A stretch of DNA of 64,000 nt from IMGVR_UViG_3300023313_000001:165508-229507, one strand, 5' to 3'. Counted from the stretch's first letter, positions 11,886 to 18,668 are shown. Notes: generated from the sequence alone by a model not told the origin. Made by a program: numbers and translations.

Positions 11886-12329
11886 ATGGCGAAATCTAAA
11901 ACTGGATGGATGCAAGGACTATACACTCCAAACCACCCTGAAAAATATAAAGGTGATTTATCCAAAATCGTTTTTAGATCCTCGTGGGAGCTAACCTTTG
12001 CTAAATTCCTGGATGGCAATCCAAATGTACTAGAGTGGGCCTCTGAAGAATTCCATATCCCGTATTTTAATCCAATCAAACAAAAAAATTCTCGATATTA
12101 CCCTGATTTCTGGGTTAAATATAAAAACAAACATGGTGATATAATCCAAGAAGTGGTAGAAATAAAACCAAGCAACCAAGTCCAACGCCCGAAACGAAAT
12201 AATAAATACGAACAAGCCACGTGGTATACCAACATGGCTAAGTGGGAAGCAGCAATTCAATTCTGTAAGGGAAGAGGTTTAAAATTCCGAGTGCTTACAG
12301 AAAAAAGCATATTCAAAAATGGGAAATAA
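11886..12329 (+). CDS. gp4: Head completion nuclease (T4 gp4-like, TnsA-type)
   Basis: G.YTPNHPEKYKGD..FRSSWE..WASEE..IPY..YYPDF..EIKP..N.AKW.AA..F.VLTE. Confidence 0.9.
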   Translation: MAKSKTGWMQGLYTPNHPEKYKGDLSKIVFRSSWELTFAKFLDGNPNVLEWASEEFHIPYFNPIKQKNSRYYPDFWVKYKNKHGDIIQEVVEIKPSNQVQRPKRNNKYEQATWYTNMAKWEAAIQFCKGRGLKFRVLTEKSIFKNGK

Positions 12330-12335
12330 CACTAA

Positions 12336-12875
12336 ATGACTGATAATTTCGATAATTTTCAAAAGCAACAACTAGTTGAGAAACAAATACCTCACCCGTG
12401 TGAGACTGTATTTGATATTGAAGATGGTTCAACAACTATTGTATCAGCCCCCCCAAGAACTACCAACTTAGTACAGCCAGACCACTACGATACTAAAGAT
12501 CAGGAAATTGAAGAACAATTCCAAGAAATATATGATAAGTCTATGGACACATTCGATGACATGCAGCGAGACATGGAGGGTATTGAAGGTAAGTACAAAG
12601 CTAGGAATGGTGAAGTTAGCGTGGCATTTTTAAACACTGCACTTAATGCTGCTAAAGAAAAAGCTCGTGTAAAAGAGCACAAAGATAAACTATCACCACT
12701 ACCAAATGATGGTAAGGTTGTGAATAACACTCAAATTAACGTATCCACTTCAGACATCATTAAAATGTTAGCTGATCGCAGAGATCCTGCGAACAACTAT
12801 GTCCCAGATGAGGAAGATCTTGTCACCCCACAAAGGACCACCATAAAAAGAAAGAAGAAAGATGATCCATCATAA
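12336..12875 (+). CDS. Probable terminase small subunit
   Basis: Helical protein upstream of terL; ARNGEV..FLNTAL and VVNNTQINVSTSDIIKML tail resemble gp16-type proteins. Confidence 0.55.
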   Translation: MTDNFDNFQKQQLVEKQIPHPCETVFDIEDGSTTIVSAPPRTTNLVQPDHYDTKDQEIEEQFQEIYDKSMDTFDDMQRDMEGIEGKYKARNGEVSVAFLNTALNAAKEKARVKEHKDKLSPLPNDGKVVNNTQINVSTSDIIKMLADRRDPANNYVPDEEDLVTPQRTTIKRKKKDDPS

Positions 12876-12934: not shown

Positions 12935-13369
12935 ATGAACACCAATACTGAAAATCGTCAACACTTACGCAAAATGCTAGATGCCATCATCAATGAAGAT
13001 ATGGATACAGCCAAAACAGCCTTCCATGACTATGTAGTCAACCGATCTAAAACTATCCTAGAAATGGACTGTTGTGATCCAGTAGGCGGTACTGGAACAG
13101 CTGACCCAAAATCAGCTAAAGGCTCTAGCGATGTAAAAGCTTCCATGAGTAAAACTGCAAAAGATGAAATCGCTAAAAAAGGTGAAGCAAAAGCTGATCC
13201 AAAGGCTGCTAAAGGCTCCAAGGATGTGAAAAGTACTATGAAACGTGGTAAGGCTATTCCTAAAAAAGGTGAAGCAAAATCTGATCCAAAGGCTGCTAAA
13301 GGCTCAAAGGATGTTGAAGGTACCATGAAAAAAGCTGATGATAAAAACATCACTGGTAAGAAAAACTAA
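12935..13369 (+). CDS. Prohead core/internal protein with Lys-rich repeats
   Basis: LRKMLDAIINEDMDTAKTAFHDY..ILE N-terminus; three copies of ADPKAAKGSKDV; late promoter at 12870. Confidence 0.45.
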   Translation: MNTNTENRQHLRKMLDAIINEDMDTAKTAFHDYVVNRSKTILEMDCCDPVGGTGTADPKSAKGSSDVKASMSKTAKDEIAKKGEAKADPKAAKGSKDVKSTMKRGKAIPKKGEAKSDPKAAKGSKDVEGTMKKADDKNITGKKN

Positions 13370-13396
13370 AAGAATTCCCTGCTACCTTAGGGTATA

Positions 13397-13428
13397 AACC
13401 ATATCAGTTTCACGATTGATATGGTTTT
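13397..13428 (+). terminator. Intrinsic terminator
   Basis: aaaccatatcag..ttgatatggttttt hairpin with T tract. Confidence 0.6.
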
Positions 13429-13498
13429 TCTTTATGTGGAAGGTCAGCAACACCCGTCAGTACGGTAAATACTACAACATCGATAGGTATAGTTCACA

Positions 13499-14248
13499 AT
13501 GAATAAAACTCTCAACACGTTATTAGCTCACTTCACTTCGGAACAAAACTGGTGGGACCAGTTCCATCTAGCATACCTGATGAATCCCACAGCATTCATA
13601 GAAGACTGTATCACACTAAATACAGCCCCTATACAATTACTTCAGCATCAACGTGACCTCGTTGAAATATATGAATATCATGACCATGTGTATGTTGCAT
13701 CTGCTAGACAAGTGGGGTTATCTACAATAAACAATGCATTTATGCTTTGGCAATGTGTATTCCAACACGACACATCTATTCAAATTTTTGCACAAGACGA
13801 TACTGGAGCATGTGATCTGAGAACAATACGGCAAATGTATGACTCTCTACCTAACCAAGTACGAGCTAGAGTGAAAATTCAACTTCATAAAACTACTCAT
13901 GGAATACTATCGTTCGACAATGGGTCCTCTATCACTGTACTGTCAACCAGTTTCAATGCTCTGCATGGCATCCCACCAGCAGATGTACTACACATAGTAC
14001 GTCCATCTATGTTTTCTACCAAAAACTTACAAGAAGTAGAACAAGCGTTGATACACCCAACTGTTCATGCTGGTGGATCAATACAAGTCACCGATTGCAT
14101 CAATGCTAACCTAGAGTTAATAAACACGCATGCTATGTTTGCTTGTAAAATTCCATGGAACGTGGTGCCTGGACGAGATCAACAATTCAAAGACGACACT
14201 ATTCGCAGAATAGGACAGCAAGCCTGGAATGACGACTATGGGGATTAA
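13499..14248 (+). CDS. Degenerate terminase-ATPase-domain paralogue (predicted inactive)
   Basis: SARQVGLST (Walker A Lys to Leu), FDNGSSI, LHIVR in place of LYLDE, PWNVVPGRDQQFK..W..DY matches end of TerL ATPase domain. Confidence 0.7.
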   Translation: MNKTLNTLLAHFTSEQNWWDQFHLAYLMNPTAFIEDCITLNTAPIQLLQHQRDLVEIYEYHDHVYVASARQVGLSTINNAFMLWQCVFQHDTSIQIFAQDDTGACDLRTIRQMYDSLPNQVRARVKIQLHKTTHGILSFDNGSSITVLSTSFNALHGIPPADVLHIVRPSMFSTKNLQEVEQALIHPTVHAGGSIQVTDCINANLELINTHAMFACKIPWNVVPGRDQQFKDDTIRRIGQQAWNDDYGD

Positions 14249-14250
14249 AT

Positions 14251-15936
14251 GTGGCTAAAAATATAAATATAAAAAAAGCATACACTACCCAAGACCTCTC
14301 AACTGAACAGATTACAGAAATCGACAGATGTATGTACGGGTGCATTAACCAGACCACTGGCATCCAGGAATGTGGGCCTATATACTTTGCCAAAAATTAT
14401 GTTAGAATCCAACACCCCAAACGTGGAGATGTACCATTTCTATTATATCCATACCAAGAAAAAATGATGGACACATATCTCAACAACAATAAAGTGGTGG
14501 TGTTATCTGCTCGCCAAACAGGAAAGGAACAGCCACATACTGCACGTATAGCCACTCCTACCGGTTGGGTCACTATGGGGGACATTCAGCCTGGGGATAC
14601 CGTATTGACTCCTGATGGTAGCACGTCAACAGTCATCCAAAAACATCCTCAAGGAACTAAGCAAGTCTATCGTATTACGTTTGACGATGGGTCGTTTGCT
14701 GAATGTGGAATTGATCATTTATGGAGTTGTAATATTCATGATAGATTATCTTCCGACACTAGCACCAGTACAGTGCCAACATCTGAATTAATTACAATGA
14801 TGGATAACGATCACGTATACCAATATCGCATAGACATACCTCTAGTGGATGTAGTCAATTTTAATGAGCAACAATTGACAATGGACCCGTTTGAGCTTGG
14901 TGTGCAATTGCGAACAAATACATCTTCACAATCTCACATACCAGAAGTATACTTACGTAGTTCACCAAACCAACGTACAGCATTATTGAACGGATTGATA
15001 TCCAATAAATCCATCAGCAAGAAATTTACTGTTTCTCATATAACCTCAAAACAACTACGGTCAGACATCCAACAACTAGTATGGAGTCTAGGTGGTACCT
15101 GTTCATATAATACAACAAGTGAACAAGACGATACTGTGTACGAACTGTATATAGAACCACCATCACTATCAGGTACACTTAAACGAACAATTATATCTAT
15201 CAATGCTGTGAGACACGAACAATCATCGTGTATATCAATCGATCACCCAAAACAGTTGTATATCACAGACAATTTCACTGTCACACATAACAGCATAACA
15301 TCCGCCATATTTTTATTGTGGTTTGCTATGTTTAATCCTGATAAGACATTATTAATCGCAGCCAACAAAAACGATCTAGCCATTGAGATGATTCAACGTA
15401 TCCAGTACGCATATGAGTTCTTACCCATGTGGTTGAAACCTGGGGTTACTGACGACGGTTGGAATAAACATAGTATAAAATTTGATAACAAATCTCGCAT
15501 TGTTTCTACTGCAACATCTGCTAACTCTGGTCGTGGTATGTCTATATCGCTTTTGTATTTGGATGAATTTGCGTTTGTAGCACCAAACATTCAAGAAGAA
15601 TTTTGGACCTCAATTCTACCAACATTATCTACTGGTGGTGCTTGTATAATGTCGTCCACACCAAACGGAGCAGTGGATAAGTTTGCTAGCATTTGGCGTG
15701 CAGCCAATATGGAAAATAATACTGATGGTCTGTTGTTTAAGGCTATTGAAGTCAAATGGGACGAACCACCAGGACGAGGCGAACAATTTAAGCGTGATCA
15801 TATTGTAATGTTGGGTGAACTTAAATGGGCTCAGGAATATGAGTGTTGCTCAGGTGATACTGTAGTAACATTACAGGATGCTGTTGGTAATATATTGCAA
15901 AAAACGCTAAAGGAACTATACAGTGAGTTGGGTTGA
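14251..15936 (+). CDS. terL: Terminase large subunit, N-terminal (ATPase) part; contains a cis intein and ends in a split-intein N fragment
   Basis: YFAKNYVRI.HP..G..PF.LYPYQ, RQTGK/S, GRGMSISLLYLDEFAF, SSTPNG, QEYE. Confidence 0.93.
   Translation: MAKNINIKKAYTTQDLSTEQITEIDRCMYGCINQTTGIQECGPIYFAKNYVRIQHPKRGDVPFLLYPYQEKMMDTYLNNNKVVVLSARQTGKEQPHTARIATPTGWVTMGDIQPGDTVLTPDGSTSTVIQKHPQGTKQVYRITFDDGSFAECGIDHLWSCNIHDRLSSDTSTSTVPTSELITMMDNDHVYQYRIDIPLVDVVNFNEQQLTMDPFELGVQLRTNTSSQSHIPEVYLRSSPNQRTALLNGLISNKSISKKFTVSHITSKQLRSDIQQLVWSLGGTCSYNTTSEQDDTVYELYIEPPSLSGTLKRTIISINAVRHEQSSCISIDHPKQLYITDNFTVTHNSITSAIFLLWFAMFNPDKTLLIAANKNDLAIEMIQRIQYAYEFLPMWLKPGVTDDGWNKHSIKFDNKSRIVSTATSANSGRGMSISLLYLDEFAFVAPNIQEEFWTSILPTLSTGGACIMSSTPNGAVDKFASIWRAANMENNTDGLLFKAIEVKWDEPPGRGEQFKRDHIVMLGELKWAQEYECCSGDTVVTLQDAVGNILQKTLKELYSELG
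14527..15291 (+). mobile_element. Cis intein (255 aa, class 3 signature) in TerL Walker A with degenerate LAGLIDADG remnant
   Basis: GK|EQPHTARIATPTGW..GD.V; block B DHLW; block F SCISI; ends VTHN|S; removal restores RQTGKS. Confidence 0.88.
15844..15933 (+). mobile_element. Split intein N fragment (30 aa)
   Basis: QEYE|CCSGDTVVTLQ..KTLKELYSELG then stop; intein block A. Confidence 0.88.
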
Positions 15937-17554
15937 TGTTTATAAGTCATTAACATACTTAGTTGATGAGTTTAAACACAAACCTCCATCAAGTAACTTT
16001 AGTAGGTGGCGAACTGAGGAATTCCACTTATTGAAAGAAGCTACATCATTTTTATCAGATGCTGCATCTGCCAGTGAGCGGTTGTGGTACATTGATCATA
16101 GACAACACCATGCAACTTTGTGCAGAATATGTAATAAAAACTTATTATCGTGGATTAATAAAGAACGAGATTACAGAGCCACATGCGGTAAATGTAATGG
16201 TAAACTACCTGCAACTGCAGCTAAACGCAAAGCAACTATGCTGGAAAGATATGGTGTTGAAAGTTATACTCAGCATGACCAATTCAATGACAAACGTATA
16301 TCTACCAATCAACAACAGTATGGAACTGATTGGGGACTTCAATGTCCACACATTCAAGATAAACGCAAAAGTACCATGATGGAACGATATGGTGCTGAAA
16401 ACACTTTACAGTCGCCTGTACTAAAACAAAAAGTCATTAATACTCTTCAACAAAAATATAATGTCAAACATAATTCACAAACAACACATTGGCGTGAGTC
16501 TGTAAGGCAAACTTTTCTTGAAAACCTGGGTGTTGAACATAATACCCAACTTCAAATAGACCCAGTATCGTTAATTAAGTTAAATGATCGGAATTATCTA
16601 AAATCAAAACATATCACTGAACAAATTCCACTACATGTTATAGCCAAGGAATTACAAGTTAACCAAACCACAGTAGCCAATTATTTTAGAAAACACGATA
16701 TAACTATTCAACGATTTCCGAAATCATATGGTGAGCGAACACTAAGCGAATTTATCCAACAACTAGGAATAATTGTAATAAATGGAGATAGATCAATAAT
16801 CCAACCATACGAATTAGATATTGTATTACCTGAACATAAAATAGCCATAGAATACTGTGGTTTATTCTGGCACTCTGAAACTTGTGGAAAAGACAAACGA
16901 TACCATGAAATGAAAATGAAGTTAGCTAATGCAGCAGGGTACAGACTGTTAACAATATATGAAGATGAGTGGGTTAAACGAACCAACCAAGTCAAGAATA
17001 AAATTAAACATATGTTAGGAATGTCTGTGGATAAAGTATATGCTAGAAAATGTACTGTCGAACTAGTAGACAACAAGCAGGAATTTTTCGATAAACACCA
17101 CATCCAAGGATCAGGTCCAGGCAGCATAACATTCCAGTTAGTGGTGAATGAACGACCTTGTGCCATGATGACATTTATTCAATGTAAAAACCAATCTTTC
17201 TATTTGAACAGATATGCAACATCAATGAGTGTCGTCGGTGGTTTTAGTAAATTGTTGAAACACTTCGAAAAAAATATTAAATGGTCTAAAATAATATCAT
17301 TTGCAGACCTGAGGTGGAGTGATGGTAATTTATATCGTCAGTGTGGTTTTGAACTGGATGGAATAATCCCACCTGATTATTATTACTCACCCAATGGCGT
17401 AGATCGATACCATAAATCTAATTATAGACATGCACAATTACCTAAGCGATTAGCTAACTACGATCCAACCAAAACTGAATGGGAAAATTGTGATGTCAAT
17501 GGAATTCATCGTATTTGGGATTGTGGTAAAATGAGGTTTGTGAGATATGCCTGA
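15923..17554 (+). CDS. Hef-like homing endonuclease inserted between the two terL halves
   Basis: ERYG repeats; ELDIVLPEHKIAIEYCGLFWHSE; SFADLRWS; RIWDCG; overlaps both terL ORFs. Confidence 0.8.
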   Translation: MSWVDVYKSLTYLVDEFKHKPPSSNFSRWRTEEFHLLKEATSFLSDAASASERLWYIDHRQHHATLCRICNKNLLSWINKERDYRATCGKCNGKLPATAAKRKATMLERYGVESYTQHDQFNDKRISTNQQQYGTDWGLQCPHIQDKRKSTMMERYGAENTLQSPVLKQKVINTLQQKYNVKHNSQTTHWRESVRQTFLENLGVEHNTQLQIDPVSLIKLNDRNYLKSKHITEQIPLHVIAKELQVNQTTVANYFRKHDITIQRFPKSYGERTLSEFIQQLGIIVINGDRSIIQPYELDIVLPEHKIAIEYCGLFWHSETCGKDKRYHEMKMKLANAAGYRLLTIYEDEWVKRTNQVKNKIKHMLGMSVDKVYARKCTVELVDNKQEFFDKHHIQGSGPGSITFQLVVNERPCAMMTFIQCKNQSFYLNRYATSMSVVGGFSKLLKHFEKNIKWSKIISFADLRWSDGNLYRQCGFELDGIIPPDYYYSPNGVDRYHKSNYRHAQLPKRLANYDPTKTEWENCDVNGIHRIWDCGKMRFVRYA

Positions 17555-17906
17555 TAAGATGAAATATAATACAACTGGTTATCAAATACTAACAGATAGT
17601 GGGTTCAGACCGTTTGTGGGCATATCAATGATGGGAAAACAGATGCTCCTAAAGTTTGAGTTCAACGATGGAACATCAATTGAAGTTACTCCAGGCCATA
17701 AATTTATCTATAACACCAAACTGATTGACGGTGAGATTGTAGGTGTACCTATTCATGCAAACGTGTTGTCAGTGGGTGATCAAATATCCACGATGGATGG
17801 CGAAGTTGAGATCGTAAGTATATGTGAAAGCACTGACCAGCAAACGTACGATTTAATTGAGGTTGGTGATCACAAGTATAAAACTAACTCAGTAATATCC
17901 CACAAC
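17547..17906 (+). mobile_element. Split intein C fragment (about 120 aa)
   Basis: ILTDSGF..F.G; block B VTPGHKF; TYDLIEV..HKYKTNSVISHN|C. Confidence 0.9.
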
Positions 17907-18668
17907 TGTGAATTTTTATCATCAGATCCATTGTTAATAGATTCCATGGTGATTGGACAACTGGAAAGTAATGTCAGCTTACCTATCCGCGAAGATATGG
18001 GATTTAAATTTTGGAAACAACTACTCCCAAATAAAACATATTTAATTGGAGTCGATCCGGCAACTGGATCTGGTGAGGATTTTTCTACAATACTAGTATA
18101 TGATTTTCAAGATCTATCCATGGTTGCAGAATGGCGGTCAAACACCATGTCGTCCCCTCAATTGTATGCTGCACTCAAATTGGTACTCAAACAAATCGAA
18201 TCGCACCAAAGTATGGCATATTTCTCAATAGAAAACAATGGTGTGGGAGAGGGGGTGATTGCGTTATATGAAAATGACGAAAAATTACCGGAAAATTGTG
18301 AGTTTGTATCTGAAGAAGGCGGAAACCGATTGGGCATGCGGACTGAAAGTCGTGTCAAACTACGAACATGTATGGTGATGAAACAATTAGTTGAATCTGG
18401 AAAAATAGAGATTAAATCTGAAATGATGCTGCGTGAATTGAAAAGTTACGTGTCCACTAGAGGATCGTACGCTGCTCAAATAGGTGCAACAGATGATCTT
18501 ATATCTGCATTGCTAATTGTACTCAGACTATTATCAGAGATGGCAACGTATGAACAACGAGCTCATGAATTGATGAACCAATATGATGATATTGGTTCAT
18601 TTAGTGCTGAAGATACAGAGGGAGTATATGATGATGATAAATTTATTCCGGACAGCTTTGTTTTTTAA
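17547..18668 (+). CDS. terL: Terminase large subunit, C-terminal nuclease part, preceded by split-intein C fragment
   Basis: After SHN|CEFL: YLIGVDPATGSGEDFS, IENNGVG, GATDDLI RNase H-fold terminase motifs. Confidence 0.93.
   Translation: MPDKMKYNTTGYQILTDSGFRPFVGISMMGKQMLLKFEFNDGTSIEVTPGHKFIYNTKLIDGEIVGVPIHANVLSVGDQISTMDGEVEIVSICESTDQQTYDLIEVGDHKYKTNSVISHNCEFLSSDPLLIDSMVIGQLESNVSLPIREDMGFKFWKQLLPNKTYLIGVDPATGSGEDFSTILVYDFQDLSMVAEWRSNTMSSPQLYAALKLVLKQIESHQSMAYFSIENNGVGEGVIALYENDEKLPENCEFVSEEGGNRLGMRTESRVKLRTCMVMKQLVESGKIEIKSEMMLRELKSYVSTRGSYAAQIGATDDLISALLIVLRLLSEMATYEQRAHELMNQYDDIGSFSAEDTEGVYDDDKFIPDSFVF

Follow-up and report, generated by a model that had tools for sequence, protein, structure and literature searches.

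A stand-alone homologue of the large terminase ATPase domain with degenerate catalytic motifs, encoded directly upstream of terL in a jumbo phage

Genes around the terL locus

The window, i.e. the whole stretch of DNA that was analysed, comprises 64,000 nucleotides and is the final 64 kb of a 229.5-kb viral contig from a microbial-mat metagenome. As CheckV rates this contig as 65% complete, the phage is a jumbo phage. In the region of interest, two tail-tube genes are followed by the gene of a gp4-like head-closure nuclease (11886..12329), a candidate small terminase subunit gene, a lysine-rich ORF, a hairpin, the ORF that is the subject of this work (13499..14248, plus strand) and terL. This ORF encodes a protein of 249 amino acids, referred to below as the paralogue, which BLASTP, PHROG, AF2/Foldseek and profile alignment characterize as a stand-alone and, from its motifs, catalytically dead counterpart of the ATPase domain of the large terminase subunit TerL. 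It opens with an ATG and ends with a TAA located 2 nt ahead of the GTG start of terL at position 14251, in agreement with the initial, sequence-only reading of the locus, which had described an intact ORF directly upstream of terL.

The candidate small subunit (TerS; 12336..12875, plus strand) resembles gp16 of phage T4 (phrog_445, 3.4e-6), has a homologue in locus L036 (1.6e-7) and is distinct from the paralogue. The lysine-rich ORF of 144 amino acids (12935..13369, plus strand) contains three copies of a short repeat of the type K-G-E-A-K-x-D-P-K-A-A-K-G-S-K-D-V; a search for family matches returned none, and ORFs with 65-69% identity occupy the same position in L025 and L027. Between the lysine-rich ORF and the paralogue lies a terminator-like hairpin (13396..13427; 13396..13437 with its T-run, plus strand) that has a 14-bp stem, and this stem shows compensatory substitutions in L025 and L027. 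Since two relatives thus retain the hairpin, the terL transcription unit probably begins with the paralogue. A conserved 16-nt motif, CCCTGCTACCTTAGGG, precedes the hairpin (window 13375..13437).

TerL itself is encoded in two parts. The N-terminal gene (14251..15936, plus strand) comprises the active ATPase extein, an intein inserted in the P-loop (14527..15291) and, at its end, the 30-aa N-fragment of a second, split intein (15844..15933). The C-terminal gene (17547..18668, plus strand) starts with the 120-aa C-fragment of the split intein (17547..17906), which ends with ..SHN ahead of CEFLSSD, and continues with the RNase H-like nuclease domain (Terminase_6C, 1e-11). Between the two halves, a free-standing homing endonuclease gene is found (15923..17554, plus strand; phrog_3339, 1e-113), the product of which has 543 amino acids and is of the Vsr-like/DUF7487 type. 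This arrangement is the 'fractured gene' layout described by Dassa et al. 2009 (PMC2677866). L003, L004 and L022 share the terL split site of the window, while terL is unsplit in L025 and L027. The second intein of the window (15844..17906) we take to be an atypically split intein like that of AceL-TerL. The P-loop intein is located between G-K and S, starts with a Glu and not with a Cys or Ser, and contains the motifs D-H-L-W, S-S-C-I-S-I-D and T-H-N|S; presumably it is a class-3 ('WCT') intein. In the related phage L040 the same P-loop intein additionally carries a LAGLIDADG domain. There, a kinase gene directly follows the terL N-half and a homing endonuclease gene (L040:4001-8816), and no intein C-fragment with a nuclease half was seen in the 8.8 kb examined. 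In the closest relative, two more DUF7487 homing endonuclease genes flank the tail-tube gene (L025:1053-5067). The DUF7487 homing endonuclease family is active across the phage group to which the window belongs.

Homology, fold and catalytic motifs of the paralogue

BLASTP aligns residues 73-247 of the paralogue with residues 345-530 of the TerL encoded next to it (62.8 bits, E 1e-15, 26% identity), and a second segment pairs residues 44-73 with residues 62-91. In TerL, the P-loop intein lies between these two segments and accounts for the gap. The paralogue matches the PHROG terL family 5989 (3e-19), while a Pfam scan returned no match at E 0.1; the profile of the family described below matches T4 gp17 with 3e-61. 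An AF2 model built from a 47-sequence family alignment reached a pLDDT of 88.4 and a pTM of 0.87. Its top Foldseek matches in the PDB are structures of the T4 gp17 ATPase domain (2o0h, 2o0j and 3cpe; E 6e-14 to about 1e-13, TM 0.77), other large terminases rank next, and the TerL bound by Avs3 (8dgc) is found at rank 11 (TM 0.61). Hence, the model has the TerL-type ASCE P-loop ATPase fold, and structure prediction alone leads back to the terminase ATPase that had been proposed from the sequence. The paralogue is collinear with the gp17 ATPase domain (2o0h, 3cpe; Terminase_6N) in its N-terminal subdomain, Q-motif, P-loop, strand order and hinge, so the colinearity with TerL noticed in the sequence-only reading holds.

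The C-terminal RNase H-like nuclease domain is absent, as had been recognized from the sequence. The ORF stops at the hinge between ATPase and nuclease domain and shows no match to Terminase_6C, whereas the real nuclease domain at 17547..18668 does. Its C-terminus, ..WNDDYGD, stands where TerL reads ..WAQEYE and where the second, split intein starts. The earlier suggestion that the ORF ends near the position at which terL is split is thus correct as to position; the implied link to the split is a coincidence at a domain boundary, as orthologues of the paralogue precede unsplit TerLs. ORF 13499..14248 encodes a free-standing protein that is homologous to the TerL ATPase domain and has no nuclease domain.

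The catalytic motifs were compared in a profile alignment of 50 paralogues and 54 TerLs. In the window copy, the equivalent of the Q-motif, L-L-Q-H-Q (residues 47-51; 13637..13651, plus strand), retains the adenine-contacting Gln, Q51. The P-loop is degenerate and reads S-A-R-Q-V-G-L-S-T (residues 68-76; 13700..13726, plus strand); Arg70 and Gly73 are kept, while the Walker A Lys is replaced by Leu74, so that G-L-S is found in place of G-K-[S/T]. At the Walker B position, Val167-Arg168 (13997..14002, plus strand) replace the Asp-Glu pair, and at the C-motif position S-T-P has become D-C-I (residues 199-201; 14093..14101, plus strand). The Arg of the G-R-G stretch, located between the F-D-N-G-S strand and Walker B, is replaced by H156. 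The Walker A and Walker B substitutions and the retained Gln of the adenine motif, all three read from the sequence beforehand, are confirmed by this alignment. Judged by its motifs, the window paralogue cannot hydrolyse ATP, as the Walker A Lys, both Walker B acids, the G-R-G Arg and the C-motif are all replaced. These residues and the nuclease domain distinguish it from T4-type TerLs; besides, its gene stands on its own next to a complete terL, and its evolution is several-fold faster. The paralogue fails three of the four features that define a TerL, and it should be annotated neither as terL nor as terS.

Across the family, loss and retention follow the same pattern. The Walker A Lys is present in 51 of the 54 TerLs; as the database paralogues were picked for lacking it, the comparison at this position is partly circular, while the other positions are independent. 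The catalytic Glu is found in all 54 TerLs and in only two of the 50 paralogues, where it is substituted by Asp (19 sequences), Asn (13), Gln (4) or other residues, and the Walker B Asp occurs in 28 of 50 paralogues compared to 54 of 54 TerLs. The P-loop Arg and the P-loop Gly, on the other hand, are kept in 50/50 paralogues each, the Q-motif Gln, nearly invariant as Q51, in 48/50 and the Arg of the G-R-G stretch in 34/50. The N-terminal subdomain and the C-terminal hinge motifs are likewise retained. The most degenerate members include the window copy and its two nearest orthologues. A minority of the stand-alone proteins retains some or all catalytic residues: P0021 has kept the Lys and carries Asp in place of the Glu, and P0081, a 271-aa ATPase-only protein encoded in the same slot as the window copy in phage L040, has intact Walker A, Walker B and C-motifs. 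The L040 protein belongs to a different subclade of the tree. As the members that keep their motifs are scattered among dead ones on the tree, catalysis has been lost repeatedly within the family.

Non-catalytic subunits of P-loop machines and other pseudoenzymes are ATPase duplicates that have kept the fold and part of the nucleotide pocket without the catalytic Lys and Glu. The paralogue family follows this course, as it keeps the fold and parts of the pocket and recurrently loses the same two residues. Unlike such subunits, it is encoded by a gene that is dispensable in close relatives.

Distribution, selection and divergence

Some of the searches for relatives gave few results. Neither a megablast of the region against isolate phages nor a pattern-based locus search with the ORF returned a match, and a word-indexed protein search found no protein besides the ORF itself when run with the paralogue and 7 proteins only when run with the family profile. 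With tblastn, 739 of 50,697 phage records were matched; all of the matches listed lie under genes annotated as terL or unnamed, with an identity of 27% or less. An exhaustive HMMER search returned 925 matches, and the best 150 include about 45 proteins of 220-310 amino acids that lack the Walker A Lys. The closest of them, P0002 (E 1e-37) and P0007, are encoded on contigs that share full synteny with the window (tube, gp4-like, TerS-like, K-rich ORF, paralogue, terL, kinase). The terL genes of these two contigs are unsplit; one encodes 896 amino acids including a LAGLIDADG intein, the other an intein-free protein of 528 amino acids. Intact syntenic orthologues are found in L025/L026 and L027. 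In the closest relatives, the gene is thus present and intact and not frameshifted.

In more distant phages, 21 terL loci were collected from IMG/VR with the TerL nuclease half as bait. Eight of these viral contigs carry an intact paralogue of 214-296 amino acids that overlaps the start of an unsplit terL; the stop codon of the paralogue and the start codon of terL are 2 nt apart in the window and overlap by 4 nt in other loci. P0005, P0009 (on a 368-kb contig), P0010 and P0021 likewise lie directly 5' of terL and represent four further metagenomic lineages. Altogether, the paralogue stands beside a complete terL, as a rule directly 5' of it, in the window, L025, L027, L040, L036, L039, L037 and the eight IMG/VR loci. 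Two exceptions are L038, a short contig, and the isolate Sinorhizobium phage Phosso, in which an equally dead copy is located 52 kb from terL (PV764938.1 249808..250653; L035:3809-4654). This copy has G-R-S-M-G-I-T as its P-loop and F-A-D-N at the Walker B position. A close homologue of the Phosso copy was not found in other isolates, and no resemblance to TerL was seen in the ORFs that precede terL in Phosso, PA5oct and Vibrio phage 2.275.O.

In the protein atlas, the paralogue is surrounded by dozens of viral-protein clusters of 246-330 amino acids with 66-131 members each, and neither Pfam nor PHROG holds a dedicated family for these proteins. The members have about 215-300 residues, typically ~250, consist of the ATPase domain only and end at the hinge, ..W..EY(EC.F); the window copy fits this description. 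Most carriers have an unsplit and intein-free terL. The paralogue belongs to an old and widespread 'TerL-N-like' family of T4-like and jumbo phages that is known mostly from metagenomes, and is not, as the sequence-only reading had implied, peculiar to the phage of the window. No description of a family of dead TerL ATPase-domain paralogues was found in the literature on large terminases, TerL paralogues and Avs, nor did a text search of a 2021 review on jumbo-phage comparative genomics and of an Avs5 preprint reveal any mention of it. The proteins apparently form an undescribed family of terminase-derived pseudoenzymes.

Several other origins of the ORF were considered and rejected. N-halves of split terL genes (Dassa et al. 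2009, PMC2677866), which occur in the window (14251..15936) and among the database matches, resemble the paralogue in being ATPase-only, in their similar length and in ending at the same hinge; they contain, however, all catalytic residues and an intein N-fragment of ~30 amino acids for trans-splicing, neither of which the paralogue has. A duplicate of such an N-half is not compatible with the absence of an intein fragment, with the unsplit terL of most carriers and with the fact that family members usually extend 3-6 residues beyond the split site (..EYECEF). A fusion with TerL by read-through or frameshifting was dismissed, as the relative frames differ among orthologous loci. A recent tandem duplication is contradicted by the low identity of the paralogues to their own TerLs (24-49%) and by their clustering apart from the TerLs. 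An open frame of 249 codons at 38% GC has a chance probability of ~2e-8 by our own estimate from the base composition of the window; since the frame is also open in every orthologue found, it is not a chance product. Metagenome contigs from a microbial-mat run cover the locus at ~200x, show no variants and bridge both ends of the ORF, but as this run may be the source sample of the window, the coverage is no independent support. The only RNA run of the sample contains nothing from the paralogue region, which has no bearing on expression.

The paralogue is under purifying selection at the protein level, as estimated from dN/dS ratios in unsaturated pairs of relatives. The ratio is 0.12 for L015 versus L016 and 0.32-0.38 for L011 versus L015 or L016, compared to 0.08-0.12 for terL in the same pairs. 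Purifying selection is accompanied by rapid divergence. An identity of 83-93% between TerL ATPase domains goes along with only 25-40% between the paralogues: 89-93% versus 25-36% among the window, L025 and L027, 90% versus 40% between L036 and L039, and 86% versus 30-34% between L011 and both L017 and L020. Within the gene block of the window, the paralogue has the lowest identity and the highest dN of the genes compared; dS is saturated there. The reading frame is nevertheless open in every lineage examined, despite an amino-acid divergence of >60%.

On the tree, the paralogues cluster away from their own TerLs, and in a first tree 43 of the 50 fell on one side of a well-supported branch. A tree that constrains all 50 to a single clade was not rejected and had a likelihood above that of the free tree (AU test p = 0.68), from which it follows that the duplication is probably old and that the gene was retained. 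With the caveat of long branches, the tree points to one old duplication as the origin of the paralogues.

The presence of the gene is patchy. L006 carries a paralogue, whereas L005 and L008 lack it despite nearly the same TerL. One and the same alpha/beta-hydrolase gene precedes the paralogue and terL in six loci and terL alone in five. In L011-type phages, this gene encodes ~193 amino acids and lies just 5' of the paralogue or of terL (L011:2360-2938, L005:8596-9207 and homologues); at the loci where it precedes the paralogue it had been considered as a candidate TerS, an assignment that was dropped when it turned out to be a hydrolase. As the paralogue is missing from loci with nearly the same TerL, it cannot be an obligatory part of the motor. 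Such patchiness, together with very fast divergence next to a near-static TerL, would suit an accessory role or one in conflict, for a decoy and a regulator alike, and argues against an obligatory motor subunit.

Possible roles of the paralogue

Large terminases belong to the most conserved and most thoroughly studied enzymes of phages and are a main target of bacterial pattern-recognition immunity. The role that we tentatively put first for the paralogue is that of an accessory partner or regulator of TerL that is independent of hydrolysis. This ranking reflects that the place of the gene at the start of the terL unit is conserved and that the hallmarks of TerL are retained. The protein would be made together with TerL from one transcription unit and would act without hydrolysis, as an accessory of the packaging enzyme. 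The surfaces inherited from TerL would probably bind TerL, TerS or the portal, by which the paralogue may tune assembly or restrain premature ATPase or nuclease activity; in some lineages it would be dispensable. The paralogue does not simply stand in for TerS, as separate gp16-like candidates for this subunit exist in both the window and L036. Should it bind TerL, TerS or the portal, it would add a new level of regulation to the packaging motor of large phages.

Some observations stand against an accessory partner. A static TerL (89-93% identity) predicts a slowly evolving partner, yet the paralogues are 25-36% identical. The paralogue and terL may be neighbours only because the one arose from the other by tandem duplication, and phage genes often overlap in any case; in Phosso and on L038 the gene does not adjoin terL. 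A complex prediction for the window paralogue with the TerL of L027, the ATPase domain of which is 93% identical to that of the window, gave a score of 0.01 with an alignment that left out three isolate sequences; according to the tool, a low score is no evidence against binding.

Rapid divergence beside a static TerL and patchy presence are also typical of genes involved in conflict, and a TerL mimic is therefore ranked second, although we consider it unlikely. Made with TerL or shortly ahead of it, the dead domain would occupy STAND sensors of the Avs1-3 type without triggering them, or soak up host or satellite factors directed against TerL. In favour of this, the fold is shared with the targets of Avs1-3, and Avs3 binds TerL directly in a structure that is among the fold matches of the paralogue (PDB 8dgc). 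The very fast divergence next to a conserved TerL, the patchy presence among close relatives and the retention of all non-catalytic sequence hallmarks of TerL are consistent with mimicry as well, and the repeated, independent loss of catalysis indicates that activity is not what is selected. Avs3, however, reportedly contacts both the ATPase and the nuclease active site of TerL and its bound nucleotide, and the paralogue has neither the nuclease half nor the active-site residues. If such a fragment did bind, it could switch the sensor on instead of blocking it. In addition, the gene is located in the structural and packaging module and not in an early or accessory hotspot, and its dN/dS is well below 1. 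If the family did consist of mimics that giant T4-like phages keep for conflict and not for packaging, blunting Avs-type host factors or satellite factors which recognise or exploit the terminase fold, this would be a new counter-defence principle and the first case of a protein that serves as decoy for a conserved phage 'pattern' protein.

The shared fold also raises the question of whether the paralogue is built into the motor. A non-catalytic subunit of a heteromeric packaging ring or holoterminase would have the fold of the ring-forming domain and would be co-encoded with terL, as observed, and some family members, e.g. P0081, retain every catalytic motif. Inactive paralogous subunits are known from other P-loop machines, such as F1 alpha and the delta/delta' subunits of clamp loaders. 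In T4, however, ATPase-dead subunits poison the pentameric packaging motor. As sister phages with a near-identical TerL lack the gene, as its divergence is extreme while TerL is static, and as the complex prediction, with the reservation given above for low scores, lends no support, we regard such a subunit as improbable.

Poisoning could in turn be the purpose of the protein, which would then act as a dominant-negative weapon against relatives or satellites that co-infect the cell and need a TerL of this type. Fast evolution and patchy distribution would fit such a conflict between viruses; since the TerLs of carriers and non-carriers are nearly identical, self-poisoning would be hard to avoid, which makes this role very improbable.

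It appears hardly credible that the ORF has no function and is the decaying leftover of a partly duplicated terL or of a resident terL that was displaced. While the degeneracy of the window copy and its dN, the highest of the gene block, could be taken as signs of decay, no lineage examined has lost the open frame, unsaturated pairs give a dN/dS of 0.12-0.38, the fold is predicted with confidence, and the single clade compatible with the AU test speaks for an old and retained gene.

Equally far-fetched is a functional small terminase subunit or an intein-free backup for the split terL. The slot directly 5' of terL is the classical position of terS, as for gp16 of T4, with which the paralogue may share a regulatory link to TerL, and the terL of the window is burdened with two inteins and a homing endonuclease gene. 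The ASCE ATPase fold of the paralogue is, however, unrelated to that of TerS, a small oligomeric helical protein, and the gp16-like ORF lies two genes upstream of it; as to a backup, the terL of most carriers is unsplit and intein-free, and a dead ATPase cannot replace an active one. The annotation of the Phosso copy as 'terminase small subunit', which would favour a TerS, is probably wrong for what is a dead paralogue of the TerL ATPase domain. At present, TerL-N-like ORFs are annotated as hypothetical, terL or terS, and such annotations can mislead terL phylogenies and the calling of terminase genes in metagenomes.
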